Assembly (NCBI RefSeq): GCF_032444005.1
Contig: NC_091289.1
Span: forward strand, 5,890,001-5,954,000
Direction of reading: 5' to 3'
DNA length: 64,000 nucleotides
Origin: Ranitomeya imitator
Lineage: Eukaryota
Shown: in pieces, positions 11,928-58,785 of the stretch
How the letters are laid out: each line of letters opens with the position of its first letter
How positions within the stretch are numbered: the first letter of the stretch is position 1
The notes under the pieces: model-generated
What the model was told of the DNA's origin: nothing
Seen by the model: the letters and a program-made list of their open reading frames with translations, nothing else
Databases searched by the model: none
Position numbers and translations under genes: made by a program

Positions 11928-12002
11928 GTGAGTGCGGAGGCCGCGGGTGTGTCCGGGCCTGTAACATCGTGTACAACACAGCGACCAATCCGGAGATGCT
12001 GG

Positions 12003-13767: not shown

Positions 13768-14433
13768 GCTCCCCCTAGTGGTGGCTGCAGACAGAATCGT
13801 ATCATGTATCTCTGTATACAGGGAGCTCCCCCTAGTGGTGGCTGCAGACAGAATCGTATCATGTATCTCTGTATACAGGGAGCTCCCCCTAGTGGTGGCT
13901 GCAGACAGAATCGTATCATGTATCTCTGTATACAGGGAGCTCCCCCTAGTGGTGGCTGCAGACAGGATCTTATCATGTATCTCTGTATACAGGGAGCTGC
14001 CCCTAGTGGTGGCTGCAGACAGAATCGTATCATGTATCTCTGTATACAGGGAGCTCCCCCTAGTGGTGGCTGCAGACAGGATCTTATCATATATCTCTGT
14101 ATACAGGGAGCTCCCCCTAGTGGTGTCTGCAGACAGAATCGTATCATGTATCTCTGTATACAGGGAGCTCCCCCTAGTGGTGGCTGCAGACAGGATCTTA
14201 TCATGTATCTCTGTATACAGGGAGCTCCCCCTAGTGGTGGCTGCAGACAGAATCGTATCACGTATCTCTGTATACAGGGAGCTCCCCCTAGTGGTGGCTG
14301 CAGACAGGATTTTATCATGTATCTCTGTATACAGGGAGCTCCCCCTAGTGGTGGCTGCAGTCAGAATATTGTCATGTATCTGTATACAGGGAGCTCCCCC
14401 TAGTGGTGGCTGCAGACAGGATCTTATCATGTA
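13768..14433. repeat. 57-bp minisatellite (~12 units), start of duplication copy 2
   Basis: Same 57-bp unit, beginning abruptly at the junction. Confidence 0.95.
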
Positions 14434-17337: not shown

Positions 17338-18349
17338 TATTGCTGTCTTTATAACGAGGACAACAGTAAAGTTACAGGAACCTAAGAAGGGGTCATGGGA
17401 TGTGTCTATTCATACTGCAGCATCTCTGGAAACAGGTCCGAGCGAGATCAGCAAGATGGAATATGGGCATCTGGAAATGGGACTAATGTACCCAACAATG
17501 TAACCTCCATAACCTCAGTTATCTGTAGGAAATCAGCGTAATATTTATACTCAGGTGATGGGTTGGGATTTGGTTTGGTTCCATGGAGCAAGTGCTGATG
17601 TTTTTTCTTATATTATTTATCTTTTAAACTGTGGGAATGAGTTAAATCAATGAGGCACCTTGCAGCTCATCCCTCATTGGTGTCACCAGGTTATCGAATA
17701 TTTCTCATAAACGTTGGCCACTCCTACAAAATAATGGCAGCTCCCACATTATCGAACGTTCCTTTAAAAGTCACGCTTCTAGTTAATTGTCTTTCGCTCT
17801 TTTATATTTTGCGTATGTTATATTTTAGGGCTTTTGCATTTGCTACCTACAGGGACTGCATGTACCAGATCTGTGGTATTTTATTTATTATGTTTTTAAT
17901 TTATGTAAATGAATGTAACTTTGTTTATTCGCACAAATAAAAAAGGTAATGCTACGCTAATGTTGTCAGTTGTTGCGAATCTCATGGCAGAGGAGATAAT
18001 GATCCTTCAAGAATTTCACAAACTGGAGGTTCAGACAGATTCAAAAAGATCTCAGGATCTCCCAGGGTTACACAAATATGACATTCTATGCAATATGTCT
18101 CTCAACCTCCGCATTAGAGGGCACTGCCCAGCAATAACATGTCAATGTGCTGTTTATTCCAGGCAGTCAGTGTATTTCATTGGTTAGTGTTTACATACAA
18201 AAAAATCAGGTTTCACACCGCACCCAATTTGGAGGAGAACATAATGCCTGGAGATGGACACAATGGTCGAGGGTGGAGGATCATGGGCGTAGATGAATGA
18301 AGCTTTGGCTTCGGATATGTTGGCGACTTGGGTCATCACTGACTATTAC

Positions 18350-18731
18350 GCTATGTGCACACGTTGCGGATTTCACTGCGGATCCACAGCGGATTGGATG
18401 CTGTGGATTTGCAGCAGTTTTCCATACGGTTTACAGTACCGTGTAAACCTATGGAAAACAAAATCCGCTGTGCACATGCTGCAGAAAATACCACGCAGAA
18501 ACGTTGCAGTTTATTTTCTGCAGCATGTCAATTCTTTGTGCGGATTCCGCAGCATTTTTCATCTGCTCCTCAATAGGAATCCGCCGGTGTAAAACAGCAG
18601 GTAAAATCCGCACATAAAATGCAGGAAATCCATGAGTAATCCGCAGGTAAAATGCAGTGCATTTTACCTGTGGATTTTACAAAAACTGAGCAGAAAAATG
18701 TGCACAGAAATCCGCAAGGTGGGCACATAGC
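18350..18731. mobile_element. MITE (duplicated copy of 8733-9114)
   Basis: Same TIRs, offset 9617. Confidence 0.7.
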
Positions 18732-18952
18732 CCTGCACCACTTTATTACACTATTTAGGATATGCACTGAGAGATTCAGCACTCTCCCACACTCCACACG
18801 CAAGGAGCTGTAGGTCGCTGGTTCCTAGATTGGCACCAAGTAGAGGCTAAAAATGAGCCTAATAGGAAATGTGACAATAACCAAAAAAAAATACAAAACT
18901 ATCAAATTTAATCCATTGCTGATATGAGGCTACTAATTTGATTTGTTCCTTA

Positions 18953-19353
18953 GGCTTCCTTCACACTTGCGTTGTTTGTAATCCATCGCAATGCGTCGTT
19001 TTGGGGAAAAAACAGATCCTGCAAATGTGCCGGCAGGATGCGTTTTTTGCCCATAGACTTGTATTGCCGACGGATCGTAATGTATGGCCATACGTCGTGC
19101 ACTGGATGCGTCGTGTTTTGGCGGACCGTCGGCACAAAAAAACGTTCAATGTAACTTTTTTTGTCTGTTGCGTCCGCCATTTCCTACCGCGTATGTGCAG
19201 TCGGAACTCCGCCCCCTCCTCCCCGGGACATAGAATGGGCAGTGGATGCGTTGAAAAACTGCATCCGATGCCCACGTTGTGGCGAATTTTCACAACGTAC
19301 GTCGGGCCGACGCATTGCGACGGCCCCGTACCGACGCAAGTGTGAAAGAAGCC
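18953..19353. mobile_element. PIF/Harbinger-type MITE (duplicated copy)
   Basis: Same TIRs and TTA TSD, offset 9614. Confidence 0.85.
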
Positions 19354-19738
19354 TTAGTGACGATGTGATACACATTTGTCTGCTGCAGACAATCTCTGAC
19401 CGCTGCACTGATCATGTGGCTGTATATGATGTCCATAAAGAAAACAGCACATAACATCATTTTCTTTGCAATTTTTATCAATTTGGATTTCATAAGTTTA
19501 TGTTCAAATACTTCATTCTTTCATAATATTCTATTCCCTAATGTGAAAAAAACATCCAGAGTGCGATGCGGGCTCCAACAAAGCTTCCAGGCTGCAGTCA
19601 CAGCTTTGGTGTGGGCCGTACATGGGCACATGAGCGCCGCCGAGGAATGAACAGAGATGCTGAGCTACAGGGAAGCGCCTGAGGCCACATTTGTGGGGAC
19701 CTACCCCTGTGTCAAGCCTCTATGAAAGCATAAAGGGT

Positions 19739-19925
19739 GGCCTTGTTCACACTAGCAGTATTTGGTCAGTATTTTACATCAGTATTTGTAGCCAAAACCA
19801 GGAGTGGAACAATTAGAGGAAAAGTATAATAGAAACATATGCACCACTTCTGCATTTATCACCCACTCCTGGTTTTGGCTACAAATACTGATGTAAAATA
19901 CTGACCCAATACTGCTAGTGTGAAC
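19739..19925. mobile_element. Foldback MITE (duplicated copy)
   Basis: Same arms as 10125-10311. Confidence 0.8.
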
Positions 19926-20364
19926 TGTGGACCGGACGTGTGAACTGTGGACCGGACGTGTGAACTGTGGACCGGACGTGTGAACTGTGGACCGGACGTG
20001 TGAAATGTGGACCGGACGTGTGAAATGTGGACCGGACGTGTGAACCGTGGACTGGACGTGTGAAATGTGGACCGGACGTGTGAAATGTGGACCGGACGTG
20101 TGAAATGTGGACCGGACGTGTGAAATGTGGACCGGACGTGTGAAATGTGGACCGGACGTGTGAAATGTGGACCGGACGTGTGAAATGTGGACCGGACGTG
20201 TGAAATGTGGACCGGACGTGTGAAATGTGGACCGGACGTGTGAAATGTGGACAGGACGTGTGAAATGTGGACCGGACGTGTGAAATGTGGACCGGACGTG
20301 TGAACCGTGGACCGGACGTGTGAAATGTGGACTGGACGTGTGAACCGTGGACCGGACGTGTGTA
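19918..20364. repeat. 20-bp minisatellite (~22 units)
   Basis: Same unit as 10304-11490, much shorter array. Confidence 0.96.
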
Positions 20365-20599
20365 CTGGACCTGTGGACCGAGGCCAGGATCCCAGTGAAG
20401 ACCCCTCTGTTTTCACTCGTGGCCCCTGCAGCTGAGGAGACATGACCCCACTGCCAGTGTCTCAGGTCCTCGCTGCCCCTTCCGCCATCAGGTTTGTTTA
20501 CACAGAGAACATAAATATTTAAGAATCAGAACAGAATTCTGTAAATATTGAAGTCAGAGAAAGATACAATGTAACAACCAGAACCCTCCGCTGGCTCCT

Positions 20600-20700
20600 C
20601 CCACAATCCCGCCCCTGGGAACGTCCCGGCAGCAGATTGGACGGCGCAGAGTGAGAAGTTGTAGTGGGCGGGGCCGCAGTGATTGACGGCAGCGCTGCTC
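20600..20700 (+). promoter_or_regulatory. CpG-island promoter of the BORCS6-like gene
   Basis: GC boxes cccgcccc (20608) and gggcgggg (20666), inverted CCAAT (attgg, 20636), and CpG-rich context just upstream of ATG 20771. Confidence 0.55.
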
Positions 20701-20770
20701 CAGGCTAAATTGTGAGGAGGAAGATGTGAGGCCGCGACTGCCCGGAGCACAGGGGAGGACGGCGGTCAGG

Positions 20771-23700
20771 ATGAGCTCCAAGCCCGGCGCGGAGCGGGAC
20801 AGTGAGTGCGGAGGCCGCGGGTGTGTCCGGGCCTGTAACATCGTGTACAACACAGCGACCAATCCGGAGATGCTGGGGGTGATGTGCTGCCGACCGTGTG
20901 TGAGGGGAAGGGGGGCGATGTGCTGCCGACTGTGTGTGAGGGGAAGGGTGGTGATGTGCTGCCGACCGTGTGTGAGGGGAAGGGTGGTGATGTGCTGCCG
21001 ACTGTGTGTGAGGGGAAGGGTGGTGATGTGCTGCCGACTGTGTGTGAGGGGAAGGGTGGTGATGTGCTGCCGACCGTGTGTGAGGGGAAGGGTGGCGAAG
21101 TGCTGCCGACCGTGTGTGAGGGGAAGGGTGGCGAAGTGCTGCCGACCGTGTGTGAGGGGAAGGGGGGCGATGTGCTGCCGACTGTGTGTGAGGGGAAGGG
21201 TGGTGATGTGCTGCCGACCGTGTGTGAGGGGAAGGGTGGTGATGTGCTGCCGACCGTGTGTGAGGGGAAGGGTGGTGATGTGCTGCCGACCGTGTGTGAG
21301 GGGAAGGGGGGTGATGTGCTGCCGACCGTGTGTGAGGGGAAGGGGGGCGATGTGCTGCCGACCGTGTGTGAGGGGAAGGGGGGCGATGTGCTGCCGACCG
21401 TGTGTGAGGGGAAGGGTGGCGAAGTGCTGCCGACCGTGTGTGAGGGGAAGGGTGGCGAAGTGCTGCCGACCGTGTGTGAGGGGAAGGGGGGTGATGTGCT
21501 GCCGACCGTGTGTGAGGGGAAGGGGGGCGATGTGCTGCCGACCGTGTGAGAGGGGAAGGGTGGCGAAGTGCTGCCGACCGTGTGTGAGGGGAAGGGTGGC
21601 GAAGTGCTGCCGACCGTGTGTGAGGGGAAGGGGGGTGATGTGCTGCCGACCGTCTGTGAGGGGAAGGGGGGTGATGTGCTGCCGACCGTGTGTGAGGGGA
21701 AGGGGGGTGATGTGCTGCCGACCGTGTGTGAGGGGAAGGGTGGCGAAGTGCTGCCGACCGTGTGTGAGGGGAAGGGTGGCGAAGTGCTGCCGACCGTGTG
21801 TGAGGGGAAGGGTGGTGATGTGCTGCCGACCGTGTGTGAGGGGAAGGGTGGTGATGTGCTGCCGACCGTGTGTGAGGGGAAGGGGGGTGATGTGCTGCCG
21901 ACCGTGTGTGAGGGGAAGGGGGGCGATGTGCTGCCGACCGTGTGTGAGGGGAAGGGTGGCGAAGTGCTGCCGACCGTGTGTGAGGGGAAGGGTGGCGAAG
22001 TGCTGCCGACCGTGTGTGAGGGGAAGGGTGGCGAAGTGCTGCCGACGTGTGTGAGGGGAAGGGGGGTGATGTGCTGCCGACCGTGTGTGAGGGGAAGGGT
22101 GGCGAAGTGCTGCCGACCGTGTGTGAGGGGAAGGGTGGCGAAGTGCTGCCGACCGTGTGTGAGGGGAAGGGTGGTGATGTGCTGCTGACCGTGTGTGAGG
22201 GGGAAGGGTGGTGATGTGCTGCCGACCGTGTGTGAGGGGAAGGGTGGTGATGTGCCGCCGACCGTGTGTGAGGGGAATGGGGGTGATGTGCTGCCGACCG
22301 TGTGTGAGGGAAAGGGGGGGTGACGTGCTGCCGACCGTGTGTGAGGGGGAAGGGTGGCGATGTGCTGCCGACCGTGGAATAAAGGTGCGCTGTGAGATTG
22401 CTGAAAAGCCTGTGTCACTGAGTAATGAGGGAAGGTTTTCTGTCGGTTGTTCTACGTGCGCAGCCAGATGTCCCCGTGTGCTGGCGAATGCTCCCAGGAT
22501 GGCGATTACCCGGCTGACCAGGAGGTGGCGCTCAGCAGTGACACCTCCTGGTCACCAAAGCGCTAAAAATGGCAAACACTGAACCCGCTGCAATGTGAGA
22601 GCGACTCGCTGAGCACAAGATTCCGTCTTTTGTCGCTTCTATAAACCGGTTTCGGCGCTGGATGCTGTGAAGCGACTGCTCCGTTCTTCGGGCGCCTTCA
22701 CCTTGCACTGCTGATGAGGGTTGTAGTTTTCAGCAGCTGTTTAGGTTCCTATGAATTGGATGTAATTGTAACAAACCCTCAGCTGAGAAGTGGCTCTTCA
22801 ATGCGGAAGAGGGTGGACCCCACTAGTGATTTTTCTGGGGGCTCTAATGAGGTTTCCTGTGTGAACGTGTACCTACAATCTCCAGAACTCGTTTCCCTGT
22901 GTTGTAGCTGACATCAATGTCCGCCATCATGCGCTGCAGAGAAGCAGAGCCGACATCCCCCCCATCGACCTGGAGGTGTTGAAGGACCTGGAGATCCTCA
23001 CTCAGGAAGTTGCACTAAAAGTCGATCAGATGATGAAAAGTTTGAGCGGCACAATCCAAAATGTAAGATCGTACATGAGCGCTATCAGCTGTAGCAGGGG
23101 AGGCGATCAGCGAGACCACGATCAATGGCGCGTGCGACTGATATGGACAAATGCCCCAGAGAGCGGCCCCCTCGTATCTCCAGAGCTGACCACACCTTTA
23201 TTTGCAGATGACGGCGCTCAGCGTGGGATACATCCAGACGTACAGGGATTCTGTGGACAGTCTCGGGGAGTCAGTGGACATGAGCATCAAGGTAGGAGAC
23301 GGAACGACAAGTAGAGAAGGTCGGATACCCCCCCCCCCCCCCCTATTTAATAAAACTCCAATCCTGGAACATCTTTTGTTAAAATTCTACATTGTACTGT
23401 TCCTACTCCAGAGCTGCACTCACTATTCTGCTGGTGCAGTCACTGTACATACAGGATCTAACTCAGGATCAGTAATGTATTATACTCCAGAGCTGCACTC
23501 ACTATTCTGCTGGTGCAGTCACTGTGTACATAGATTACTGATCCTGAGTTACATCCTGTATTATACCCCAGAGCTGCACTCACTATTCTGCTGGTGCAGT
23601 CACTGTGTACATAATTACATTACTGATCCTGAGTTACATCCTGTATTATACCCCAGAGCTGCACTCACTATTCTGCTGGTGCAGTCACTGTGTACATACA

Positions 23701-29054: not shown

Positions 29055-32000
29055 GTATCACATCACACAGGAGAGGATTAGATACACGGCTCAGCAGTCA
29101 GTATCACACAGGAGAGGATTAGATACACGGCTCAGCAGACAGGATCACAGGAGAGGATTAGATACACAGCTCAGCAGACAGTATCACACAGGATAGGATT
29201 AGATACACGGCTCAGCAGTCAGTATCACACAGGAGAGGATTAGATACACGGCTCAGCAGACAGTATTACACAGGAGGGGATTAGATACACGGCTCAGCAG
29301 ACAGTATCACACAGGATAGGATTAGATACACGGCTCAGCAGTCAGTATCACACAGGACAGGATTAGATACACGGCTCAGCAGGCAGTATCACACAGGAGA
29401 GGATTAGATACACGGCTCAGCAGTCAGTATCACACAGGAGAGGATTAGATACACGGCTCAGCAGTCAGTATCACACAGGAGAGGATTAGATACACGGCTC
29501 AGCAGTCAGTATCACACAGGAGGGGATTAGATACACGGCTCAGCAGTCAGTATCACACAGGAGAGGATTAGATACACGGCTCAGCAGTCAGTATCACACA
29601 GGAGAGGATTAGATACACGGCTCAGCAGTCAGTATCACACAGGAGGGGATTAGATACACGGCTCAGCAGACAGTATCACACAGGATAGGATTAGATACAC
29701 GGCTCAGCAGACAGTATCACACAGGATAGGATTAGATACACAGCTCAGCAGTCAGTATCACACAGGAGAGGATTAGATACACAGCTCAGCAGACAGTATC
29801 ACACAGGATAGGATTAGATACACAGCTCAGCAGTCAGTATCACACAGGAGAGGATTAGATACACGGCTCAGCAGTCAGTATCACACAGGAGAGGATTAGA
29901 TACACGGCTCAGCAGACAGTATCACACAGGATAGGATTAGATACACAGCTCAGCAGTCAGTAGCACACAGGATAGGATTAGATACACGGCTCAGCAGTCA
30001 GTATCACACAGGAGAGGATTAGATACACGGCTCAGCAGACAGTATTACACAGGAGGGGATTAGATACACGGCTCAGCAGTCAGTATCACACAGGAGGGGA
30101 TTAGATACACGGCTCAGCAGACAGTATCACACAGGATAGGATTAGATACACGGCTCAGCAGACAGTATCACACAGGATAGGATTAGATACACAGCTCAGC
30201 AGTCAGTATCACAGGAGAGGATTAGATACACAGCTCAGCAGACAGTATCACACAGGAGAGGATTAGATACAGAGCTCAGCAGACAGTATCACGCAGGATA
30301 GGATTAGATACACAGCTCAGCAGACAGTATCACAGAGGAGAGAATTAGATACACGGCTCTGCAGTCAATATCACACAGGAGAGGATTAGATACACGGCTC
30401 AGCAGTCAGTATCACACAGGATAGGATTAGATACACGGCTCAGCAGTCAGTATCACACAGGATAGGATTAGATACACGGCTCAGCAGTCAGTAGCACACA
30501 GGATAGGATTAGATACACGGCTCAGCAGTCAGTATCACACAGGAGAGGATTAGATACACAGCTCAGCAGTCAGTATCACAGGAGAGGATTAGATACACAG
30601 CTCAGCAGACAGTATCACACAGGAGAGGATTAGATACACAGCTCAGCAGACAGTATCACACAGGAGAGGATTAGATACAGAGCTCAGCAGACAGTATCAC
30701 GCAGGATAGGATTAGATACACAGCTCAGCAGACAGTATCACAGAGGAGAGATTAGATACACGGCTCAGCAGACAGTATCACGCAGGAGAGAATTAGATAC
30801 ACGGCTCTGCAGTCAATATCACACAGGAGAGGATTAGATACACGGCTCAGCAGTCAGTATCACACAGGATAGGATTAGATACACGGCTCAGCAGTCAGTA
30901 TCACACAGGATAGGATTAGATACACGGCTCAGCAGTCAGTATCACACAGGAGAGGATTAGATACACGGCTCAGCAGACAGTATCACACAGGATAGGATTA
31001 GATACACGGCTCAGCAGTCAGTAGCACACAGAATAGGATTAGATACACGGCTCAGCAGTCAGTATCACACAGGAGAGGATTAGATACACAGCTCAGCAGT
31101 CAGTATCACAGGAGAGGATTAGATACACAGCTCAGCAGACAGTATCACACAGGAGAGGATTAGATACACAGCTCAGCAGACAGTATCACACAGGAGAGAA
31201 TTAGATACAGAGCTCAGCAGACAGTATCACGCAGGATAGGATTAGATACACGGCTCAGCAGTCAGTATCACACAGGAGAGGATTAGATACACAGCTCAGC
31301 AGACAGTATCACAGGAGAGGATTAGATACACAGCTCAGCAGACAGTATCACACAGGAGAGGATTAGATACAGAGCTCAGCAGACAGTATCACGCAGGATA
31401 GGATTAGATACACAGCTCAGCAGACAGTATCACAGAGGAGAGATTAGATACACGGCTCAGCAGACAGTATCACGCAGGAGAGAATTAGATACACGGCTCT
31501 GCAGTCAATATCACACAGGAGAGGATTAGATACACGGCTCAGCAGTCAGTACCACACAGGATAGGATTAGATACACGGCTCAGCAGTTAGTATCACACAG
31601 GAGAGGATTAGATACACGGCTCAGCAGTCAGTATCACACAGGAGAGGATTAGATACACGGCTCAGCAGTCAGTATCACACAGGAGAGGATTAGATACACG
31701 GCTCAGCAGACAGTATCACACAGGATAGGATTAGATACACGGCTCAGCAGTCAGTAGCACACAGGATAGGATTAGATACACGGCTCAGCAGTCAGTATCA
31801 CACAGGAGAGGATTAGATACACGGCTCAGCAGTCAGTATCACACAGGAGAGGATTAGATACACAGCTCAGCAGACAGTATCACACAGGATAGGATTAGAT
31901 ACACAGCTCAGCAGACAGTATCACACAGGATGGGATTAGATACACAGCTCAGCAGTCAGTATCACACAGGAGAGGATTAGATACACGGCTCAGCAGTCAG

Positions 32001-33562
32001 TATCACACAGGAGAGGATTAGATACACGGCTCAGCAGACAGTATCACACAGGAGAGGATTAGATACACGGCTCAGCAGTCAGTATCACACAGGATGGGAT
32101 TAGATACACAGCTCAGCAGACAGTATCACACAGGATAGGATTAGATACACGGCTCAGCAGTCAGTATCACACAGGAGAGGATTAGATACACGGCTCAGCA
32201 GTCAGTATCACACAGGATGGGATTAGATACACAGCTCAGCAGACAGTATCACACAGGATAGGATTAGATACACGGCTCAGCAGACAGTATCACACAGGAT
32301 GGGATTAGATACACAGCTCAGCAGTCAGTATCACACAGGAGAGGATTAGATACACGGCTCAGCAGTCAGTATCACACAGGAGAGGATTAGATACACGGCT
32401 CAGCAGACAGTATCACACAGGATAGGATTAGATACACGGCTCAACAGTCAGTAGCACACAGGATAGGATTAGATACACGGCTCAGCAGTCAGTATCACAC
32501 AGGAGAGGATTAGATACACAGCTCAGCAGTCAGTATCACAGGAGAGGATTAGATACACAGCTCAGCAGACAGTATCACACAGGAGAGGATTAGATACACA
32601 GCTCAGCAGACAGTATCACACAGGAGAGGATTAGATACAGAGCTCAGCAGACAGTATCACGCAGGATAGGATTAGATACACAGCTCAGCAGACAGTATCA
32701 CAGAGGAGAGATTAGATACACGGCTCAGCAGACAGTATCACGCAGGAGAGAATTAGATACACGGCTCTGCAGTCAATATCACACAGGAGAGGATTAGATA
32801 CACGGCTCAGCAGTCAGTATCACACAGGATAGGATTAGATACACGGCTCAGCAGTCAGTATCACACAGGATAGGATTAGATACACGGCTCAGCAGTCAGT
32901 ATCACACAGGATAGGATTAGATACACGGCTCAGCAGTCAGTATCACACAGGATAGGATTAGATACACGGCTCAGCAGTCAGTATCACACAGGAGAGGATT
33001 AGATACACGGCTCAGCAGTCAGTATCACACAGGAGAGGATTAGATACACGGCTCAGCAGACAGTATCACACAGGATAGGATTAGATACACGGCTCAGCAG
33101 TCAGTAGCACACAGGATAGGATTAGATACACGGCTCAGCAGTCAGTATCACACAGGAGAGGATTAGATACACAGCTCAGCAGTCAGTATCACAGGAGAGG
33201 ATTAGATACACAGCTCAGCAGACAGTATCACACAGGAGAGGATTAGATACACAGCTTAGCAGACAGTATCACACAGGAGAGAATTAGATACAGAGCTCAG
33301 CAGACAGTATCACGCAGGATAGGATTAGATACACAGCTCAGCAGACAGTATCACAGAGGAGAGATTAGATACACGGCTCAGCAGACAGTATCACACAGGA
33401 TATGATTAGATACACGGCTCAGCAGTCAGTAGCACACAGGATAGGATTAGATACACGGCTCAGCAGTCAGTATCACACATGATAGGATTAGATACACAGC
33501 TCAGCAGTCAGTATCACACAGGAGAGGATTAGATACATGGCTCAGCAGACAGTATCACACAG
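29055..33562. repeat. 41-bp satellite, left arm (~110 units)
   Basis: Unit ggattagatacacggctcagcagtcagtatcacacaggaga, with higher-order variant blocks. Confidence 0.97.
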
Positions 33563-34414
33563 ACTGCAGAGACCCGTGTGTCGTAACCAGTGCCTTCCCC
33601 CGTCCCACCACTCCGTAATAAAAGATACCAACAATCCTGGATGGGTTGAACAGGTCGGTCACAGTTTTATTATTTGCAAAGTAGAGAAGGGCAATTACAC
33701 ATCGTGACGCACTCATTGCTGAAGGCCCCAGCCGACGACCGCTGGGCCAGCAAGCCGATGAGAGGTTACGAACCTTTGCCCCCCTCTACCTACCGCTGTG
33801 ACGTATATAAAAGAACGTCAACATTTATTTTTTTTTATAAAATTTAAAATTCAAAACATTTTAACAGTAATTGCACAGTACATTTACCAGTTTATAAGGG
33901 AGGGAGGGTGGGACAACAGCTTCCAAGGGTCAGCCGGGGAGAAAGAGGGAGAACCTGGCCCGGTCACTAGAATTTAACCCCTGAGGGTGTGGCCTGACTC
34001 ACCTCTTCTCCCCGGTTGGTCCGCTGGGCGTCCCAATCATGACCTCACCTGGGGAGGTAGTGGGAGGGGGGAATTGGGCACTGCACAGATTTCCCCTCTA
34101 GCTATCCCTTAGGGGCTCTGCAGTCAGAGGCACGTTCCTTATACAGTACCGTGCCTACCAGACTGCAGAGACCCGTGTGTCGTAACCAGTGCTTTCCCCC
34201 GTCCCACCACTCCGTAATAAAAGATACCAACAAACCTGGATGGGTTGAACAGGTCTGTCAGTTTATTATTTGCAAAGTAGAGAAGGGCAATTACACATCA
34301 CGACGCACTCATTGCTGAAGGCCCCAGCCGACCACCGCTGGGCCAGCAAGCCGATGAGAGGTTATGAACCTTTGCCCCCCTCTACCTACCGCCACGGAGG
34401 ATCATGTGTATGAC

Positions 34415-35023
34415 CTACACAGGACTCCGACCCCCACACAACATCATTAGAGCCTGTTCAACACCATCCCGCAAACCCTCCAAGAATATGTCGAGCCCGA
34501 TGTCCGTGAGGTGGATGCCATCTGGTCTCAGCAAAGCAAAATTGTTCCCTTCTAGCTCTTGGTGTCGAACCACAATGCCGTAATTTTCTCTCACAAACTT
34601 CGACATCTTTGTGTTAATCCTTTTTCTTGCGTTTTCGATGGCTTTTACGTCCTTAGCTCCGTGCCAGACCGCTCGAGGTATTATCTCGGACCACACCACC
34701 ACCATATCTGGTAATAAACAGACAAACCGATCGATGTCCGTTGACATTACTGTGTACAGCTCGGCCCCTTTCCGCTTGCCCAAATCATTGCCTCCGGCAT
34801 GTAGCACCAGAACCACCGGCCCCTTGGCCTTCTTAGCGATGTCGACCAACTCCGGGAAGATCTGACGCCACCGGAGCCCTCTGATGCCCCTCCAGTTGAC
34901 TTCCAAATTCGGGAAGCCAAAATTGGTTCCCCCCGTCCTGAGTTTGGCCCTTTTGCATGCCCAGTAGACAAAAGAATGCCCCACTACCCAGACTGTGGGC
35001 CTACAGCTGCCTGTAATAGACAA
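34415..35023 (-). CDS. SGNH/GDSL-family hydrolase (esterase-like) ORF of the Ngaro element, ~200 aa
   Basis: Blocks VWVVGHSF (I), GIRG (II), LHAGGNDL (III) and DGIHL (V, DxxH). No ATG at the start; a splice acceptor lies at 35011/35010. Confidence 0.88.
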   Translation of the reverse strand: MSITGSCRPTVWVVGHSFVYWACKRAKLRTGGTNFGFPNLEVNWRGIRGLRWRQIFPELVDIAKKAKGPVVLVLHAGGNDLGKRKGAELYTVMSTDIDRFVCLLPDMVVVWSEIIPRAVWHGAKDVKAIENARKRINTKMSKFVRENYGIVVRHQELEGNNFALLRPDGIHLTDIGLDIFLEGLRDGVEQALMMLCGGRSPV

Positions 35024-35029
35024 AAAGTG

Positions 35030-38000
35030 TTAGAGCAGGTCTGGTCTTATGTATCTTGCAAAGCATGCGGATTTCCAGCGGCCCATTCTCTGCACCTCGA
35101 CTTCCGATACCCCCGCTCTAGCTGCTTCGGTCGCCGCCCCTATTCGGAATGAATGTGTCCCATATTCCTTTGGAGCCACGCCGAGTGCCTCTAGGCACTG
35201 TCTAAAGATCGCTTGAAATTGATATTTAGTAAGAGGGGACCCGTCCGTGTGTGAAAGAAAGAATCTACCCGGACGTCTTACTAGCGCATAGTTTTTAACT
35301 ATTTTTACGGGGCATATTGGGACGCCTGACGCCTTGACCAATACCCATGTCCCCCTCCCGGTGGGGTCGCATTTGGATCTCCGTACTCTAATGCGCAGAG
35401 CTTCGCTGCATATGACGAGGTCTTCATTGATTAAGCCGCCTACTGATGCGGATTTTGACTGGGGCACTAATTCGCTGATGCGAAGCGCCCCGAAGAAGGC
35501 GATTGCGAACGCTGCAGATATCAGCGTTGCCTCGTATTGCGATTTGCACACCGATGAAGAAATTGCAATTATGTCGGCCAGCAGCCTTAAGGAAACTGGG
35601 CGACGGCATTCCTGACTAGGTTGCCGCCTTCTCCAGCCTTTAACGGCTTCTCTGATGAAAAAATATTTGGTTACGTCCACCCACCCCAGCAGCTGAAAGA
35701 AGAAGGCTATTCCCGACAGATGACGTTGCGCTAATGTCCCCGACGCACCTCCCCGCCTGAGCTTTTCTAAGAGTTCTACTAAGACGTCGCATCTCGCCCG
35801 GTCGCACCTATCGACTGGTCTTCCTTGCGTTAGCGAGCACCACTCCTCCCACGCCTTACCGTAAACCTGCCAAGTCGCCGGTGTCACCGAAGCGCGAATC
35901 AAGGGCATCAGTGATTGGCCACCATGTCCAAGAGGGAAGGAGGACACCGCAGGCCCGACGTTCGCGCCCTGGGGAGGAAGAGTTTGAATGCCTTTGAACC
36001 TCGCAGGTGCTCTATTTGACTGGCGGGTACATCTGGCCGCAGGGTGTCCACCTCCGCAGGAGGAGCATTCGTGTCTATATTTACAGGACCCTTGGAAACG
36101 GCAGTATCCATCGTTAAACAGTAAGCAGGCCCCAGGTCCGCGTACGACCACTGTATTCTGGCCTGCTGCTGTTGAGTGATAAGTGGTCGCTGCAGAAGAG
36201 GGGGGTTGTTTTTGGGACAACATCAGTCGTAACCAAACGTCCGTCGCTTTTACCCCCCAGCCCAAATCCGGTTGCATGGCCAACCGCCTGCGGAACTCCT
36301 CGTCGTACCGTTTCCATGCCGCCCCGCTGTGGCACTTATATGAATTATAAATTAGATCTTGGTAAATAAATAATTCGGAACAACGCTCTGGGTGCTTTTG
36401 GCCCATTATACATCCGAGAACCGCGAAGGCCTGGAGCCAGTTATTCATCGTTTGAGCTATTTTTGGTTTGCTCCTATCTTGTAACCGCTCGCCTACTCTC
36501 CTTTCCTTGTCCACGGACTGTTGGTCGGCAGATAACAGTGACCATATATCTACGTATCCATTATCCCAAATTTTTTGCCTTGTCTCTAACTCAACATGCG
36601 CTCCCAGTGGGCTAACTCCACAGAAAAATGCATCCTTGTGCAGACTAGCTGCCTGGGTGGTGCTAGTGTCAGTTGGTACGCCTGGGCGTGTCAGCTGCTG
36701 AACTAGGGTCTTAATAGCGGCCGCCAGCTCGCTTTCTCCCACATTTTGTATTGTAGAGCGCTCACCGACATCAAGGAACTCACCGCTGTCAGATGCCGGC
36801 CGAGTGTCTCCGGACGGAGGTACTCTGGCTCCTGCCGTGGCGCTGTCCTGGTGCTGGCCGCCCGCCCAGGAGGATGAAGATGGCAGGCCAGCGGCCAGCG
36901 CCGTGGCACGGGGATGTATTCTGCTGCATTGTGTCTGGTGCCGAGCGTCCCCCGGAGAGGGAGGTTCTCCGGCTTCTATTGTCTCGATGGTTCGATGCTG
37001 GCTGGTGGACCGGGGAGGTATGTATGGCGTGTCTCCCCGTGCGTCAGCCCAGGACGGAGCACGTGACGGATGACCTCTGTCGTCTGCTCGAGGATGAGAG
37101 GCTATTGGGGCGCCGATCTCGGCCTGATCGGTAACGGGGGGTGTCAGTGTCTGTTCCCACCGGGTACCCGCTCTGGGTGTCCGGTGAGACTGCCGTCTTT
37201 CGGCATGTGACCGGTACTGCCCGTTGTAACTCCCCGATGTATCTGAGCCGGTTGTGGATGGCGAGCGCCATCTGGAGGAGCGGGATCTGTGGTGGCTCCT
37301 GCGGCTCCTGTATGAGTGGTGTCGGCTTCTGGAGTGGGAATAGCGACAGCTAGAGGGACAGCGGGGACGGTGGTGGGAGTCTACTGATGAGGGTGAGGAT
37401 GATCTGCGGCATCTATGCCTGCGATCGCCCTGTCTAGGGGTTGCGTTAGGTGCATTCACCTCGGGAGTAGGGGGGACGTTACCTTGGCCATGGGGCGTGA
37501 GTGGCGGTGCAGGGGGTAGAGCCGGGGAAGGTGCGGTGACTGTTAAGCTAGCACCGCAATAGGGTGAGCGCAAAAGGGCGGGGACTGATAGGGAACTGTC
37601 TGCGATTAGCGTTTGGGAGCATGGGGGTGTTGGCGGCGCGTAATTTAATGCGGCTGTGTTAGTGTTTGGTGCGACTGTGTGCGTGCTTGGTGCGTACATT
37701 CCTGGCCGCGGAGCGTGCTGGTCGGTCTGGATAGACCAGTCATCACGCTCTGCGGCCGTGTTCGTGGCTCTGGCCCCCGACCGCCCGCCCCCCCGCACAG
37801 GCAACGCCGATGTGCCTGCTTGGGTGACGCGGCGGACCAGGAGTGGGCTGGCCAGAGGTCCACGGTGCTGCAGTCCTGGTGAGGCAGGGGACGCTGCAGC
37901 ACACCGTGGAGGGACCTGGCTCGGGGGGCTTGTGAGCGCTGTTTTTGAGGCGCCCCCCCGACCGATTTGGCGGGTTGGGGCCCCGCCGGCTAAAACTGTG

Positions 38001-38866
38001 CTGCTGATGCTTCCCGGGGAGTTAGTGGGCGGGGCTTGGTGGTCCCAAGCCGGCATCAGGGAGAGGGGACTCCCTGACGCTGCAGGGGACCAGAGGTGTG
38101 CCTGGGCCGGCTGCCCACGCTGGCCCCCGATCCCCCCGAGCGGCTGACACGCCGCCGAGGGGACAGAGGCAGCGGGCGGCCCCCTGCCTGTCCCCACACT
38201 GCAGTGGGATTGCCGGGAGGAAGTGGGGCCGGAAGTGGGTGTGTCCCGCCCAGCCCGCACTGCACTCTGGGAGGCAGGGCGGGCCTGAACAGAATGAGAG
38301 GGCGGCGGGGGTTCCAATACGCGCGTCGGGCCCCGGGTTTCAGAGCGGGGACAGGAAGTGCAGTATGGAGCAGGCACCTGGCACCGGCGGGCAGCGGCGC
38401 CAGAAGCAAGCGCCGAGACGTCCGCCGCGCATCCCGGTGCCACACGTGGGGCAGAAGCACGGCAACTTAGCAGGGCCGGCTCCCCTCCGACACGTAGACG
38501 CACGGGAGGACGGGAAGACCGCCCCGAACGTCTGCCCTGGGGCACCGCTGCGGCCCGGTCAGCCGGAGCGCCGGGGGCTAGTAGCGGGAGCCCCGGACGA
38601 CCGGAGTCTGCAGAGGCAGGGGCCGATACGATGAGCCGGTGAGTGGGGGTTAGTAGCGCTGGGGAGACAGGAGAGGACGAGGCCCCAGGAGGGGGGGTGT
38701 GCAGGGATGGAGCCCTGGGGGACGACGGGGAGGCCTGAGGGGAGGCTAGGGGGTGAGGAGAGGGCACAGGAAGGTGAGCGCCCAGACCAGGATTAGGGGA
38801 TCGCAGCCATTGCTCACCTTCCTGTGCAGCTCCCTGCTGTAGGGCCTCGGTCGTAGGGGCAGCCAT
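35030..38866 (-). CDS. Gag-tyrosine recombinase fusion ORF (1278 aa from ATG 38866)
   Basis: Low-complexity N-terminus, then a DIRS/Ngaro Gag core (YVDIWSLL...NWLQAFAV...WKRYDEEFR...CLLFNDGYC...CKYRHECSSCGGGHPAARC). It is followed by a YR with the full catalytic set: GALRISELV (R), RSKCD (K), GTHSFRIGAAT (HxxR), MGRWKS (W), ARYIRP (Y). No stop codon. Confidence 0.88.
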   Translation of the reverse strand: MAAPTTEALQQGAAQEGEQWLRSPNPGLGAHLPVPSPHPLASPQASPSSPRAPSLHTPPPGASSSPVSPALLTPTHRLIVSAPASADSGRPGLPLLAPGAPADRAAAVPQGRRSGRSSRPPVRLRVGGEPALLSCRASAPRVAPGCAADVSALASGAAARRCQVPAPYCTSCPRSETRGPTRVLEPPPPSHSVQARPASQSAVRAGRDTPTSGPTSSRQSHCSVGTGRGPPAASVPSAACQPLGGIGGQRGQPAQAHLWSPAASGSPLSLMPAWDHQAPPTNSPGSISSTVLAGGAPTRQIGRGGASKTALTSPPSQVPPRCAAASPASPGLQHRGPLASPLLVRRVTQAGTSALPVRGGGRSGARATNTAAERDDWSIQTDQHAPRPGMYAPSTHTVAPNTNTAALNYAPPTPPCSQTLIADSSLSVPALLRSPYCGASLTVTAPSPALPPAPPLTPHGQGNVPPTPEVNAPNATPRQGDRRHRCRRSSSPSSVDSHHRPRCPSSCRYSHSRSRHHSYRSRRSHHRSRSSRWRSPSTTGSDTSGSYNGQYRSHAERRQSHRTPRAGTRWEQTLTPPVTDQAEIGAPIASHPRADDRGHPSRAPSWADARGDTPYIPPRSTSQHRTIETIEAGEPPSPGDARHQTQCSRIHPRATALAAGLPSSSSWAGGQHQDSATAGARVPPSGDTRPASDSGEFLDVGERSTIQNVGESELAAAIKTLVQQLTRPGVPTDTSTTQAASLHKDAFFCGVSPLGAHVELETRQKIWDNGYVDIWSLLSADQQSVDKERRVGERLQDRSKPKIAQTMNNWLQAFAVLGCIMGQKHPERCSELFIYQDLIYNSYKCHSGAAWKRYDEEFRRRLAMQPDLGWGVKATDVWLRLMLSQKQPPSSAATTYHSTAAGQNTVVVRGPGACLLFNDGYCRFQGSCKYRHECSSCGGGHPAARCTRQSNRAPARFKGIQTLPPQGANVGPAVSSFPLGHGGQSLMPLIRASVTPATWQVYGKAWEEWCSLTQGRPVDRCDRARCDVLVELLEKLRRGGASGTLAQRHLSGIAFFFQLLGWVDVTKYFFIREAVKGWRRRQPSQECRRPVSLRLLADIIAISSSVCKSQYEATLISAAFAIAFFGALRISELVPQSKSASVGGLINEDLVICSEALRIRVRRSKCDPTGRGTWVLVKASGVPICPVKIVKNYALVRRPGRFFLSHTDGSPLTKYQFQAIFRQCLEALGVAPKEYGTHSFRIGAATEAARAGVSEVEVQRMGRWKSACFARYIRPDLL

Positions 38867-39091
38867 GGTGGTCAGGAGATCAGGGACGACAACAGCTTCC
38901 AAGGGTCAGCCGGGAAGAAAGAGGGAGAACCTGGCCCGGTCACTGGAATTTAACCCCTGAGGGTGTGGCCAGACTCACCTCTTCTCCCCGGTTGGTCCGC
39001 TGGGCGTCCCAATCATGACCTCACCTGGGGAGGTAGTGGGAGGGGGGAACTGGGCACTGCACAGATTTCCCCTCTAGCTATCCCTTAGGGG

Positions 39092-42075
39092 CTCAGCAGT
39101 ATCACACAGGAGAGGATTAGATACACAGCTCAGCAGTATCACACAGGAGAGGATTAGATACACAGCTCAGCAGTATCACACAGGATAGGATTAGATACAC
39201 GGATCTGCAGTCATCACACAGGAGAGGATTAGATACACGGATCTGCAGTCATCACACAGGAGAGGATTAGATACACGGATCTGCAGTCATCACACAGGAG
39301 AGGATTAGATACACAGGTCAGCAGTCAGTATCACACAGGAGAGGATTAGATACACAGCTCAGCAGTATCACACAGGAGAGGATTAGATACACGGATCTGC
39401 AGTCATCACACAGGAGAGGATTAGATACACGGATCTGCAGTCATCACACAGGAGAGGATTAGATACACAGGTCAGCAGTCAGTATCACACAGGAGAGGAT
39501 TAGATACACAGCTCAGCAGTCAGTATCACACAGGAGAGGATTAGATACACGGATCAGCAGTCAGTATCACACAGGAAAGGATTAGATACACGGCTCAGCA
39601 GTCAGTATCACACAGGAAAGGATTAGATACACAGCTCAGCAGTCAGTATCACACAGGAAAGGATTAGATACACGGCTTAGCAGTCAGTATCACACAGGAG
39701 AGGATTAGATACACGGCTCAGCAGTCAGTATCACACAGGATAGAATTAGATACACAGCTCAGCAGACAGTATCACACAGGAGAGGATTAGATACACAGCT
39801 CAGCAGACAGTATCACACAGGAGAGGATTAGATACACAGCTCAGCAGACAATATCACACGGGATAGGATTAGATACGGCTCAGCAGTCAGTATCACACGG
39901 GATAGGATTAGATACACGGCTCAGCAGACAGTATCACACAGGAGAGGATTAGATACACGGCTCAGCAGACAGTATCACACAGGAGAGGATTAGATACACG
40001 GCTCAGCAGTCAGTATCACACAGGAGAGGATTAGATACACGGCTCAGCAGACAGTAACACACAGGAGAGGATTAGATACACAGCTCAGCAGACAGTATCC
40101 CACAGGAGAGGATTAGATACACGGCTCAGCAGACAGTATCACACAGGAGAGGATTCGATACATGGCTCAGCAGACAGTATCACACAGGAGAGGATTAGAT
40201 ACACGGCTCTGCAGTTAGTATCACACAGGAGAGGATTAGATGCACGGCTCAGCAGTCAGTATCACACAGGATAGGATTAGATACATGGTTCAGCAGACAG
40301 TATCACACAGGATAGGATTAGATACACGGTTCAGCAGACAGAATCACACAGGATAGGATTAGATACACGGCTCAGCAGACAGAATCACACAGGATAGGAT
40401 TAGATACACGGCTCAGCAGACAGAATCACACAGGATAGGATTAGATACATGGTTCAGCAGTCAGTATCACACAGGATAGGATTAGATACACAGTTCAGCA
40501 GACAGTATCACACAGGATAGGATTAGATACATGGCTCAGCAGACAGTATCACACAGGTTAGGATTAGATACATAGTTCAGCAGACAGAATCACACAGGAT
40601 AGGATTAGATACACAGCTCAGCAGTCAGTATCACACAGGATAGGATTAGATACATGGCTCAGCAGACAGTATCACACAGGATAGGATTAGATACATGGCT
40701 CAGCAGTCAGTATCACACAGGATAGGATTAGATACACGGCTCAGCAGTCAGTATCACACAGGATAGGATTAGATACATGGCTCAGCAGACAGTATCACAC
40801 AGGATAGGATTAGATACACAGTTCAGCAGACAGTATCACACAGGATAGGATTAGATACATGGCTCAGCAGACAGTATCACACAGGTTAGGATTAGATACA
40901 TAGTTCAGCAGTCAGTATCACACAGGATAGGATTAGATACATGGCTCAGCAGTCAGTATCACACAGGATAGGATTAGATACACGGCTCAGCAGTCAGTAT
41001 CACACAGGATAGGATTAGATACATGGTTCAGCAGTCAGTATCACACAGGATAGGATTAGATACACAGTTCAGCAGACAGTATCACACAGGATAGGATTAG
41101 ATACATGGCTCAGCAGACAGTATCACACAGGTTAGGATTAGATACATAGTTCAGCAGACAGAATCACACAGGAGAGGATTAGATACATGGCTCAGCAGTC
41201 AGTATCACACAGGATAGGATTAGATACACGGCTCAGCAGTCAGTATCACACAGGATAGGATTAGATACATGGTTCAGCAGTCAGTATCACACAGGATAGG
41301 ATTAGATACACAGCTCAGCAGTCAGTATCACACAGGAGAGGATTATATACACAGCTCAGCAGACAGTATCACACAGGAGAGGATTAGATACACGGCTCAG
41401 CAGACAGTATCACACAGGAGAGGATTAGATACACAGCTCAGCAGTCAGTATCACACAGGATAGGGTTAGATACATGGTTCAGCAGTCAGTATCACAGGAT
41501 AGGATTAGATACACGGCTCAGCAGTCAGTATCACACAGGATAGGATTAGATACACGGCTCAGCAGACAGTATCACACAGGAGAGGATTAGATACACGGCT
41601 CAGCAGTCAGTATCACACAGGATAGGATTAGATACATGGTTCAACAGTCAGTATCACACAGGATAGGATTAGATACATGGTTCAGCAGTCAGTATCACAC
41701 AGGAGAGGATTAGATACACGGCTCAGCAGTCAGTATCACACAGGATAGGATTAGATACACGGCTCAGCAGTCAGTATCACACAGGAGAGGATTAGATACA
41801 CGGCTCAGCAGTCAGTATCACACAGGATAGGATTAGATACATGGTTCAGCAGTCAGTATCACACAGGAGAGGATTAGATACATGGTTCAGCAGTCAGTAT
41901 CACACAGGAGAGGATTAGATACACGGCTCAGCAGTCAGTATCACACAGGAGAGGATTAGATACACGGCTCAGCAGTCAGTATCACACAGGATAGGATTAG
42001 ATACACGGCTCAGCAGTCAGTATCACACAGGATAGGATTAGATACACGGCTCAGCAGTCAGTATCACACAGGATG
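39092..42075. repeat. 41-bp satellite, right arm (~73 units)
   Basis: Same family as 29055-33562, with different variant units (37-bp units, ggatctgcagtcatc, catggttcagc). Confidence 0.97.
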
Positions 42076-56942: not shown

Positions 56943-58785
56943 ATGGGAGCGGAGGAGACGGGATGTGCCACTGCCAGGAGCGGAGGAGACGGGATGTGCC
57001 GCAGCCAGGAGCGGAGGAGACGGGATGTGCCGCTGCCAGGAGCGGAGGAGACGGGATGTGCCGCTGCCAGGAGCGGAGGAGACGGGATGTGCCGCAGCCA
57101 GGAGCGGAGGAGACGGGATGTGCCGCTGCCAGGAGCGGAGGAGACGGGATGTGCCGCTGCCAGGAGCGGAGGAGACGGGATGTGCCGCAGCCAGGAGCGG
57201 AGGAGACGGGATGTGCCGCAGCCAGGAGCGGAGGAGACGGGATGTGCCGCAGCCAGGAGCGGAGGAGACGGGATGTGCCGCTGCCAGGAGCGGAGGAGAC
57301 GGGATGTGCCGCAGCCAGGAGCGGAGGAGACAGGATGTGCCGCAGCCAGGAGCGGAGGAGACGGGATGTGCCGCTGCCGGGAGCGGAGGAGACGGGATGT
57401 GCCGCAGCCAGGAGCGGAGGAGACGGGATGTGCCGCAGCCAGGAGCGGAGGAGACGGGATGTGCCGCAGCCAGGAGCGGAGGAGACGGGATGTGCCGCTG
57501 CCAGGAGCGGAGGAGACGGGATGTGCCGCTGCCAGGAGCGGAGGAGACGGGATGTGCCGCAGCCAGGAGCGGAGGAGACGGGATGTGCCGCAGCCAGGAG
57601 CGGAGGAGACGGGATGTGCCGCAGCCAGGAGCGGAGGAGACGGGATGTGCCGCTGCCGGGAGCGGAGGAGACGGGATGTGCCGCTGCCAGGAGCGGAGGA
57701 GACGGGATGTGCCGCAGCCAGGAGCGGAGGAGACGGGATGTGCCGCAGCCAGGAGCGGAGGAGACGGGATGTGCCGCAACCAGGAGCGGAGGAGACGGGA
57801 TGTGCCGCTGCCAGGAGCGGAGGAGACGGGATGTGCCGCAGCCAGGAGCGGAGGAGACGGGATGTGCCGCAACCAGGAGCGGAGGAGACGGGATGTGCCG
57901 CAGCCAGGAGCGGAGGAGACGGGATGTGCCGCAGCCAGGAGCGGAGGAGACGGGATGTGCCGCAGCCAGGAGCGGAGGAGACGGGATGTGCCGCTGCCGG
58001 GAGCGGAGGAGACGGGATGTGCCGCTGCCGGGAGCGGAGGAGACGGGATGTGCCGCAGCCAGGAGCAGAGGAGACGGGATGTGCCGCTGCCGGGAGGGGA
58101 GGAGACGGGATGTGCCGCTGCCGGGAGCGGAGGAGACGGGATGTGCCGCTGCCGGGAGCGGAGGAGACGGGATGTGCCGCTGCCGGGAGTGGAGGAGACG
58201 GGATGTGCCGCTGCCAGGAGCGGAGGAGACGGGATGTGCCGCAGCCAGGAGCAGAGGAGACGGGATGTGCCGCTGCCGGGAGTGGAGGAGACGGGATGTG
58301 CCGCAGCCAGGAGCGGAGGAGACGGGATGTGCCGCAGCCAGGAGCGGAGGAGACGGGATGTGCCGCTGCCAGGAGCGGAGGAGACGGGATGTGCCGCAGC
58401 CAGGAGAGGAGGAGACGGGATGTGCCGCTGCCGGGAGCGGAGGAGACGGGATGTGCCGCTGCCAGGAGCGGAGGAGACGGGATGTGCCGCTGCCGGGAGC
58501 GGAGGAGACGGGATGTGCCGCAGCCAGGAGCGGAGGAGACGGGATGTGCCGCTGCCGGGAGCGGAGGAGACGGGATGTGCCGCTGCCGGGAGCGGAGGAG
58601 ACGGGATGTGCCGCAGCCAGGAGAGGAGGAGACGGGATGTGCCGCTGCCGGGAGCGGAGGAGACGGGATGTGCCGCTGCCAGGAGCGGAGGAGACGGGAT
58701 GTGCCGCTGCCGGGAGCGGAGGAGACGGGATGTGCCGCTGCCAGGAGCGGAGGAGACGGGATGTGCCGCTGTTGGGAGCGGAGGA
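56943..58785. repeat. 31-bp CpG-rich minisatellite (~59 units)
   Basis: Unit ggagcggaggagacgggatgtgccgc(a/t)gcc(a/g). Confidence 0.97.

Follow-up and report, generated by a model that had tools for sequence, protein, structure and literature searches.

The 64,000-nucleotide stretch of the Ranitomeya imitator genome analyzed here (positions 5,890,001 to 5,954,000 of contig NC_091289.1, assembly GCF_032444005.1), hereafter called the window, contains a 5.5-kb insert of the Ngaro type that lies on the minus strand at 33558-39100 and splits a 13-kb array of a 41-bp satellite. Read along the minus strand, the insert is composed of a repeat A1, a long open reading frame (ORF), a second ORF, a repeat B1, a 34-nt spacer, a repeat A2, 115 nt and a repeat B2. 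The long ORF runs from Gag into a tyrosine recombinase (YR), the second one encodes an SGNH hydrolase, and both the reverse transcriptase (RT) and the RNase H (RH) that characterize Ngaro elements are missing. The main parts of the element are given below; identities between proteins refer to amino acids, the labels beginning with P denote matched proteins and L001 is a 4.1-kb Logan contig.

38888-39100, minus strand: split direct repeat A1, which makes up the element's 5' end; it shares 97.7% identity with A2 over 213 nt, and its outer ~14 nt form one arm of the terminal inverted motif.
35030-38866, minus strand: Gag-YR fusion ORF of 1278 aa that starts with the ATG at 38866 and is closed by the stop codon at 35032-35030 (stop-free frame, N-terminal homology to P0156).
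36784-38866, minus strand: Gag N-terminal leader, residues 1-695 from the ATG; an alignment of 373 aa with R. imitator P0176 shows 89% identity and just one gap, of 1 aa.
35996-36781, minus strand: Gag core (helical) with CCCH and CCHC-like zinc motifs; residues 108-339 of the L001 gag match 36694-35999 by tblastn.
35033-35935, minus strand: tyrosine recombinase domain with the full predicted catalytic set (Pfam PF00589, alignment to Cre, family alignment); 80% identical to Dendrobates tinctorius P0155.
34415-35029, minus strand: intact SGNH/GDSL hydrolase ORF in the frame of YR (Pfam PF13472 at 34415-35023; GHS, GGND and DGIH blocks).
34159-34392, minus strand: split direct repeat B1, 95.4% identical to B2, carrying AATAAA.
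33912-34124, minus strand: split direct repeat A2, recognized by its match to A1.
33797-33911, minus strand: AT-rich unique segment of 115 nt with TATA-like motifs, between A2 and B2 and not repeated elsewhere in the element.
33560-33796, minus strand: split direct repeat B2, the 3' end of the element, recognized by its match to B1.

The repeats follow the order A1 - internal region - B1 A2 B2 that is required of Ngaro-like elements (order DIRS), a split-direct-repeat arrangement that has been described for amphibian elements (PMC9210276). The A pair (39100-38888 and 34124-33912) differs by 5 substitutions in 213 nt, and the B pair (34392-34159 and 33796-33560, ~237 nt) by 8 substitutions and one 3-nt indel. 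The AATAAA motif occurs on the sense strand of both B copies (33666-33671 and 34262-34267); together with the TATA-like motifs of the 115-nt segment, possible candidates for a poly(A) signal and a promoter are thus present.

The frame of the fusion ORF is free of stops from 35033 to 38905. Translation yields 1290 aa if it begins at a TTG and 1278 aa if it begins at the ATG at 38866. The latter is the sensible product, since this ATG lies in a Kozak-like ACCACCATGG context and the first 55 residues that follow it align with the N-terminus of the Ranitomeya variabilis protein P0156. We have rejected the idea that the ORF is a chance product of GC-rich or satellite sequence, because the other long ORFs of the window all reside in tandem arrays, whereas the fusion ORF is non-repetitive and shows homology to frog Ngaro proteins along its length. 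Those other 'ORFs' of 200-780 aa fill satellite arrays on both strands (1-6841, 13767-16458, 56946-58785 and others) and are artefacts of repeat periodicity, not genes.

The Gag leader of ~700 aa is rich in proline and serine and includes an Arg/Ser-rich block. It is followed by a Gag core that is 42-60% identical to anuran Ngaro Gag proteins and by two zinc motifs, C-x7-C-x5-C-x3-H and then C-x2-C-x3-H-x4-C, at 36127-36029. Based on this homology to frog Ngaro ORF1 proteins, the element has the Gag-like ORF1 with zinc-finger (CH-box) motif that is typical of Ngaro. Modeled with AF2 (pLDDT 74), the Gag core has confident helices at residues 112-190, yet neither a Foldseek match below E = 0.3 in PDB or BFVD nor a PDB sequence match was obtained. 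A recognizable capsid is therefore unsupported, and on the basis of the model 'capsid' can serve as a positional label only.

The Phage_integrase domain (PF00589) occupies ~300 aa at the C-terminus of the fusion. In an alignment of 12 family sequences, R1141, K1177, H1250, R1253, W1276 and Y1284 (1290-aa numbering) fall in invariant or near-invariant columns, and the domain aligns to the H-x-x-R...W...Y block of Cre. Identity to frog Ngaro YRs ranges from 38 to 80% in the family alignment, with 55% to the YR of L001 (54.6% by tblastn). The element thus carries an Ngaro-related YR with the catalytic R-K-H-R-(H/W)-Y set and, as far as conserved positions can tell, a complete one. An earlier note, made from the letters of the window alone, had described the four split direct repeats with a divergence of 2-4%, the single stop-free 1278-aa ORF from Gag to YR, the CCCH/CCHC-like zinc motifs and a catalytically complete recombinase, and all of these have held up. 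Its picture of a 'capsid-tethered' integrase finds no support in the modeled Gag core.

The same note made no mention of the intact hydrolase ORF. This frame comprises 204 codons (34418-35029), directly follows the YR stop codon in the frame of YR, and its product is 87% identical to P0179 and 72% to P0181. A Pfam search of the element gave no methyltransferase match. The combination of an SGNH hydrolase ORF after YR and no methyltransferase is that of the amphibian/fish subgroup of Ngaro elements.

The module that is lost is pol. Pfam gave no match to RT or RNase H in ten alternative-frame segments, and in tblastn at E<1 neither a 609-aa Ngaro pol nor any of three frog proteins that contain RT/RH matched in the whole 64-kb window. 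Gag and YR queries from the same elements matched the window at 1e-81 and 1e-104, respectively. RT and RH concealed in another frame can thus be dismissed. Instead of the reverse transcriptase and RNase H that define Ngaro, only a pol tail of ~29 codons is left, which makes this copy a derivative and not an autonomous member of the group.

35908-35997, minus strand: tail remnant of the pol (RNase H) ORF with its stop codon, in an overlapping frame, aligned to the pol C-termini of L001, P0154 and P0151.
35991-35999, minus strand: deletion join, gag ..AGGTTCAA / AGGCATTC.. pol tail-YR exon, together with YR splice acceptor 1, placed by the divergence from P0176 after ARF.

The coding part of the remnant (35997-35911) matches the last ~29 pol residues of relatives, and its stop codon (35910-35908) is found at the same position relative to the YR start as in these relatives; in L001, YR starts at 2730 and pol extends to 2769. 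On its 5' side, the join was mapped with the help of P0176, a protein of the same family from R. imitator. Its identity to the window copy is 89% across 373 leader/Gag residues and 94% in the zinc finger, and it ends with a canonical Gag C-terminus. The window agrees with P0176 through "...RAPARF" and then diverges, and this parting puts the 5' side of the join at ~35996-35994 and the join itself at about 35993-35998. In L001 coordinates ~1.5 kb is missing, comprising essentially all of pol and the last ~17 gag codons. The deleted stretch extends from 11 codons past the zinc finger to ~29 codons short of the pol stop, and its 3' edge precedes the first base of the YR exon by 0-3 nt.

These comparisons bear out most of what the earlier note had proposed on the deletion: the absence of RT and RNase H, including from other frames, which it had named as a place to search; an RNase-H-tail-like remnant in an overlapping frame; and a deletion that took out Pol and fused Gag to YR. 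The alignment to relatives that it had suggested as a check, made here with P0176 and L001, delivered the map given above, and with it the placement of the join at 36000-36015 had to be abandoned in favor of 35993-35998.

The full-length kin of this copy are found in frogs. A search of 1.8 billion representative proteins returned 15,815 matches, in which the Gag part and the YR part matched different proteins. The named matches are all anuran (Dendrobates tinctorius, Ranitomeya, Anomaloglossus, Dendropsophus, Hyla, Bufo, Pristimantis and Xenopus), and the closest ones, at 87-94% amino acid identity, are Ranitomeya proteins. P0151 and P0154 consist of leader, Gag core, zinc finger, RT and RH, P0153 of RT, RH, YR and hydrolase, and L001 contains gag (141-1223), pol (940-2769), YR (2730-3644) and then the start of the hydrolase. 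Full-length kin from dendrobatids and other frogs (P0151/P0153 of R. imitator, P0154/P0167 of Anomaloglossus, P0168/P0181 of D. tinctorius, and L001) share 42-60% identity with the window copy in the Gag core and 46-80% in YR, and they have the same splice positions and phases and the same arrangement of YR, stop codon and hydrolase frame. They keep, however, the ~1.5 kb of RT/RH between zinc finger and YR exon that the window copy has lost. The closest YR locus of D. tinctorius spans 3392 nt for 365 aa, implying an intron of ~2.3 kb, and is for this reason probably a full-length element. The X. laevis locus L002, which includes 5.7 kb of N, was set aside.

The splice architecture of this lineage puts the fusion into perspective. 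In RefSeq isoforms of single loci, a shared leader splits at one fixed point into Gag, YR or hydrolase. At LOC142310334 of Anomaloglossus, isoforms X1 (P0154, Gag-RT/RH) and X2 (P0167, leader-YR) have 176 residues in common and split after "..SRDG". The Dendropsophus proteins P0170 (leader-Gag) and P0003 (leader-YR) part after "..PSGLG", and in D. tinctorius P0168 (leader-YR) and P0181, which continues into the hydrolase, part after "..TWQVYG". These isoforms are predicted models, and the same exon structure recurs at several loci in several species. The first split point coincides with a conserved "G-E-(F/Y/C)" that corresponds to a GGTGAGT donor in both L001 and the window DNA. Besides acceptor 1 at the join, the window retains the following signals.

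36777-36787, minus strand: splice donor 1, GCG/GTGAGT, exon end 36784, phase 1, at the isoform split ..DG/EF.. versus ..DG/V.. (P0154/P0167 and P0170/P0003).
35855-35862, minus strand: splice donor 2 within YR, ACG/GTAAGG, exon end 35860, phase 1; P0168 and P0181 split here and the P0179 junction is identical.
35010-35029, minus strand: splice acceptor 2, TTTTTGTCTATTACAG/GC, directly after the YR stop, exon start 35010, phase 1, with 67% pyrimidines upstream (junctions of P0181, P0182 and P0179).

At the position of donor 1, L001 reads CAG/GTGAGT. Acceptor 1 (AAAG/GC, AG at 35993-35992, exon start 35991, phase 1) follows from the exon junctions of P0179 (..GEC/IQTL..) and of P0155/P0168 (..NSG/LQSL..). 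Another candidate for the YR acceptor, CTCTTCCTCCCCAG/G at about 35972, was rejected, as it is in phase 0 versus a phase-1 donor and the junctions of relatives are located upstream of it. By arithmetic from the coordinates, the four signals are all in phase 1, and both leader-YR and leader-(45 aa)-hydrolase are in frame. The leader itself contains one more optional intron, whose donor is located at 38819 (RefSeq P0156/P0002).

Since RefSeq isoforms splice the leader to YR and the window keeps the signals to do so, a YR tethered to the N-terminal Gag leader would be a normal product in this frog lineage. What sets this copy apart is only that its Gag core and zinc finger run on into YR. The earlier note had started from the premise that gag, RT/RH and YR are separate ORFs, which is incomplete here: Gag and RT/RH form one ORF in P0151 and P0154, and spliced leader-YR and leader-hydrolase isoforms are predicted in addition. 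Frog Ngaro elements thus appear to be 'complex' retroelements, with a coding leader exon that alternative splicing connects to YR or, through a YR exon of 45 aa, to the hydrolase. We found no description in the searchable literature of a shared coding leader spliced to YR or hydrolase in frog Ngaro elements. Retroviruses express their downstream genes via spliced subgenomic mRNAs, in which one 5' donor is combined with alternative acceptors. The likeness lies in this joining of a single 5' donor to alternative downstream acceptors; it differs in that the shared 5' exon of frog Ngaro elements is coding, so that the downstream proteins would carry the Gag leader, and in that the evidence here consists of predicted isoforms.

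The deletion has also touched these signals. The polypyrimidine tract of the YR acceptor has been replaced by gag coding sequence, and upstream of acceptor 1 pyrimidines make up 41% of 29 nt in the window versus 63% of 30 nt in L001. In this copy, leader-YR splicing may consequently be weakened, with in-frame read-through as the main route to YR. As to the origin of the join, a plain retro-copy of a spliced RNA can be set aside, because the join keeps the acceptor AG and the Gag end of P0176 has no GT 5' of the join. The coincidence of the breakpoint with an exon boundary nevertheless hints that spliced RNA took part, for instance by a template switch of RT. A microhomology event is equally possible: "TTCAA(A)" is present on both sides of the join, with the Gag end encoding A-R-F-N and the pol tails of relatives S-R-F-N/K.

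The insertion site of the element provides a second point of interest.

29062-42074 (29062-33562 and 39097-42074), strand not assigned: 41-bp satellite array broken by the element, identified by TRF, each unit with a 13/14 match to the terminal arm.
34113-34174, strand not assigned: B1-spacer-A2 junction, an imperfect palindrome and candidate recombination site (folded as DNA at -23.7 kcal/mol, z = -6.6, a stability reached by 0 of 200 shuffles).

The arms of the palindrome at the B1-A2 junction are the two terminal sequences of the element. In a pattern search, 69 of the 41-bp satellite units match the arm GGCTCTGCAGTCAG at 13 of its 14 positions, against 0.06 expected, and the boundary of A1 falls within this arm-like satellite motif. 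This suggests a sequence-directed, homology-guided integration, mediated by YR, into a satellite that mimics the recombination site of the element. TATE likewise inserts at a fixed position in telomeric repeats and is in this respect comparable to the window copy. Both junctions carry ~15-19 nt of satellite (AGCAG..TATCACACAG), for which a duplication and a phase shift of the array look alike, as both flanks consist of 41-bp satellite. The satellite units that adjoin the A1 end (39097-39211) are a 37-nt variant lacking TCAG. In D. tinctorius, the gene models of P0001 and P0155, on two contigs, start in a tandem repeat of 17 aa (51 nt) upstream of the element, and related copies in that species thus also adjoin satellite DNA.

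Among known systems, the amphibian Ngaro-like elements DIRS-53_XT and DIRS-54_XT of Xenopus tropicalis come closest (PMC9210276). They share with the window copy the A1..B1A2B2 repeats of ~150-240 bp, a gag-like ORF and a YR followed by an SGNH-hydrolase ORF without methyltransferase domain, whereas the window copy differs in its lack of RT/RNase H, in a Gag that continues in frame into YR and in a Gag leader of ~700 aa. Non-autonomous derivatives of YR retroelements are exemplified by SIRE, which is derived from VIPER (PMC6681497). Like SIRE and the engineered, RT-deleted trDIRS-1 (PMC7192593), the window copy is an internal-deletion derivative with its termini kept, but SIRE is short and non-coding and the window copy retains three of four protein modules intact. 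Cryptons also encode a YR and no RT (PMC3212892). They have no long terminal or split repeats, however, and those of animals carry DUF3504-type YRs, while the window copy has full Ngaro repeats and an Ngaro-clade YR; it therefore falls outside a class defined as YR-only, free of such repeats and with a Crypton-clade YR. Literature searches for RT-less coding derivatives yielded nothing relevant.

Whether the join is a one-off or marks a family was addressed in protein collections and the JGI metagenomes. No contiguous Gag+YR protein occurs among the best 150 of the 15,815 matches. An index of 5.8 billion proteins, queried with pieces of 271 and 111 aa, contained no spanning protein of 149-474 aa or 61-194 aa, an exact look-up of the 1278-aa product found no copy in the collections, and a 23-mer across the join had no match in the JGI metagenomes. 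Among the matches listed, P0012 and P0066 match both the Gag and the YR parts; both are intron-containing gene models. P0012 of Phyllobates terribilis, in which a Gag core is followed by YR, was considered as a second RT-less element and rejected on account of its 8.6-kb gene. Because annotation masks or splices repeats and frog assemblies were not covered, these negatives are weak evidence that no other copy has the join.

The state of the ORFs can be judged against the repeats, which in Ngaro elements are expected to be near-identical at insertion (PMC6681497). When half the pairwise repeat divergence is taken as the per-lineage load, and stops alone are counted with the single repeat indel left out, the probability that both ORFs (4.5 kb) remain stop-free by chance under neutrality is ~0.12. 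The earlier note saw a hint of selection here. The ORFs are indeed open despite the divergence of the repeats, but with a neutral survival of this order the argument is weak, and their survival is a hint of constraint rather than evidence for it.

Taken together, the element is probably an internally deleted, non-autonomous copy of an anuran (dendrobatid, and most likely Ranitomeya) Ngaro family, whose full-length form encodes a Gag leader, a Gag core with zinc finger, RT/RNase H, a tyrosine recombinase and an SGNH hydrolase. All but pol is intact: the repeats, the leader, the Gag core, the catalytic residues of YR, the hydrolase and two donor/acceptor pairs in phase. The deletion would have been a single event, either a template switch or a microhomology event (TTCAA on both sides), possibly involving spliced leader-YR RNA, or a later genomic deletion, and the in-frame continuity of Gag core and YR would be its one-in-three by-product. 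If transcribed, the copy could still give rise to a Gag-related protein, to YR (as the 1278-aa fusion and perhaps as spliced leader-YR) and to the hydrolase. It would be unable to copy itself and would need RT/RNase H in trans from a full-length relative. Its entry into the 41-bp satellite would have occurred by YR recombination at a motif mimicking its own terminal arm. Having lost pol, the copy most likely represents a defective offshoot of a frog Ngaro family that is already known, and nothing shows it to be a new kind of mobile element. The earlier note read too much into a deletion and a fusion that it had recognized correctly.

Several points weigh against so simple an account. The excision is unusually tidy, removing pol almost exactly and sparing every other module, and both ORFs have stayed open over 4.5 kb despite a repeat divergence of 2.3-3.4% and an indel, an outcome that neutrality, on stops alone, would allow in ~12% of cases. 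With the polypyrimidine tract lost, the in-frame fusion may be the only efficient route of YR expression left, as selection acting on a propagating lineage would favor. The lack of other copies with the join is weak evidence for a one-off event, since annotation masks or splices such loci.

These same points feed an alternative that we consider unlikely, in which the copy belongs to a propagating, protein-coding but non-autonomous lineage of RT-less Gag-YR(-hydrolase) elements that borrow RT in trans from full-length Ngaro elements and keep the fusion because the acceptor is crippled. The ORFs, catalytic residues and splice sites that are intact despite 2-3% repeat divergence would fit such a lineage, as would the lost tract of the YR acceptor and the in-frame deletion. 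The RT of DIRS-1 has moreover been demonstrated to work in trans on an RT-deleted construct (PMC7192593). However, no protein or contig spanning the join emerged from the search of 1.8 billion representatives, the word-index searches, the exact look-up or the metagenome scan, Gag ends canonically in P0176, the other same-family copy observed, and a ~12% chance of ORF survival is not small. A more specific version is less probable still and is put forward as a long shot: the copy would be a member or founder of a trans-mobilized, protein-coding, RT-less Ngaro lineage that arose when RT, at the boundary of the YR exon, switched between genomic RNA and a spliced leader-YR RNA. The in-frame Gag-YR polyprotein would compensate for the lost acceptor tract, and the integrase that such an element brings along would be directed to satellite units resembling its recombination site.

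It is very improbable that the element moves as a YR-driven DNA element in the manner of Cryptons, with a circle excised between the direct repeats and reintegrated at satellite sites resembling the palindromic junction. A complete YR, a palindromic junction whose att-like motif recurs in the satellite, and direct repeats that could give circles are all compatible with this mode. Yet the A1..B1-A2-B2 arrangement is the product expected from Ngaro reverse transcription (PMC6681497) and would not be rebuilt if a unit circle underwent a single crossover, the recombinase groups with those of Ngaro elements (54.6% to the YR of L001), and the window showed neither empty nor solo sites. An assembly artefact, in which reads were collapsed or mis-joined in a satellite-dominated window with a segmental duplication of roughly 9 kb, is hardly credible, as the join is in frame within unique coding sequence, has single-copy element sequence on both sides and lies in a window free of Ns.

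Elsewhere in the window, a block of 20-bp and 36-bp satellites and unique sequence occurs twice, at 8060-13502 and 17677-22376. The offset is ~8.9 kb in the 36-bp arrays and in matches close to them, and ~9.6 kb in those that lie further upstream. Both 36-bp arrays have identical TRF statistics. The doubling is due to a duplication that is either segmental or introduced by the assembly.

Taken by itself, one pol-deleted Ngaro copy is what transposon decay ordinarily produces. If the copy turned out to represent a family, Gag and integrase would be kept and only RT borrowed, a configuration that is not described for YR retroelements and that would offer a natural system to separate the cis and trans action of Ngaro proteins. 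The broader points, which seem more useful than the copy itself, are the coding leader exon shared among the proteins of frog Ngaro elements and the satellite half-site. As every surrounding satellite unit carries a near-perfect half-site of the B1-A2 palindrome, the target choice of an Ngaro YR becomes directly testable.

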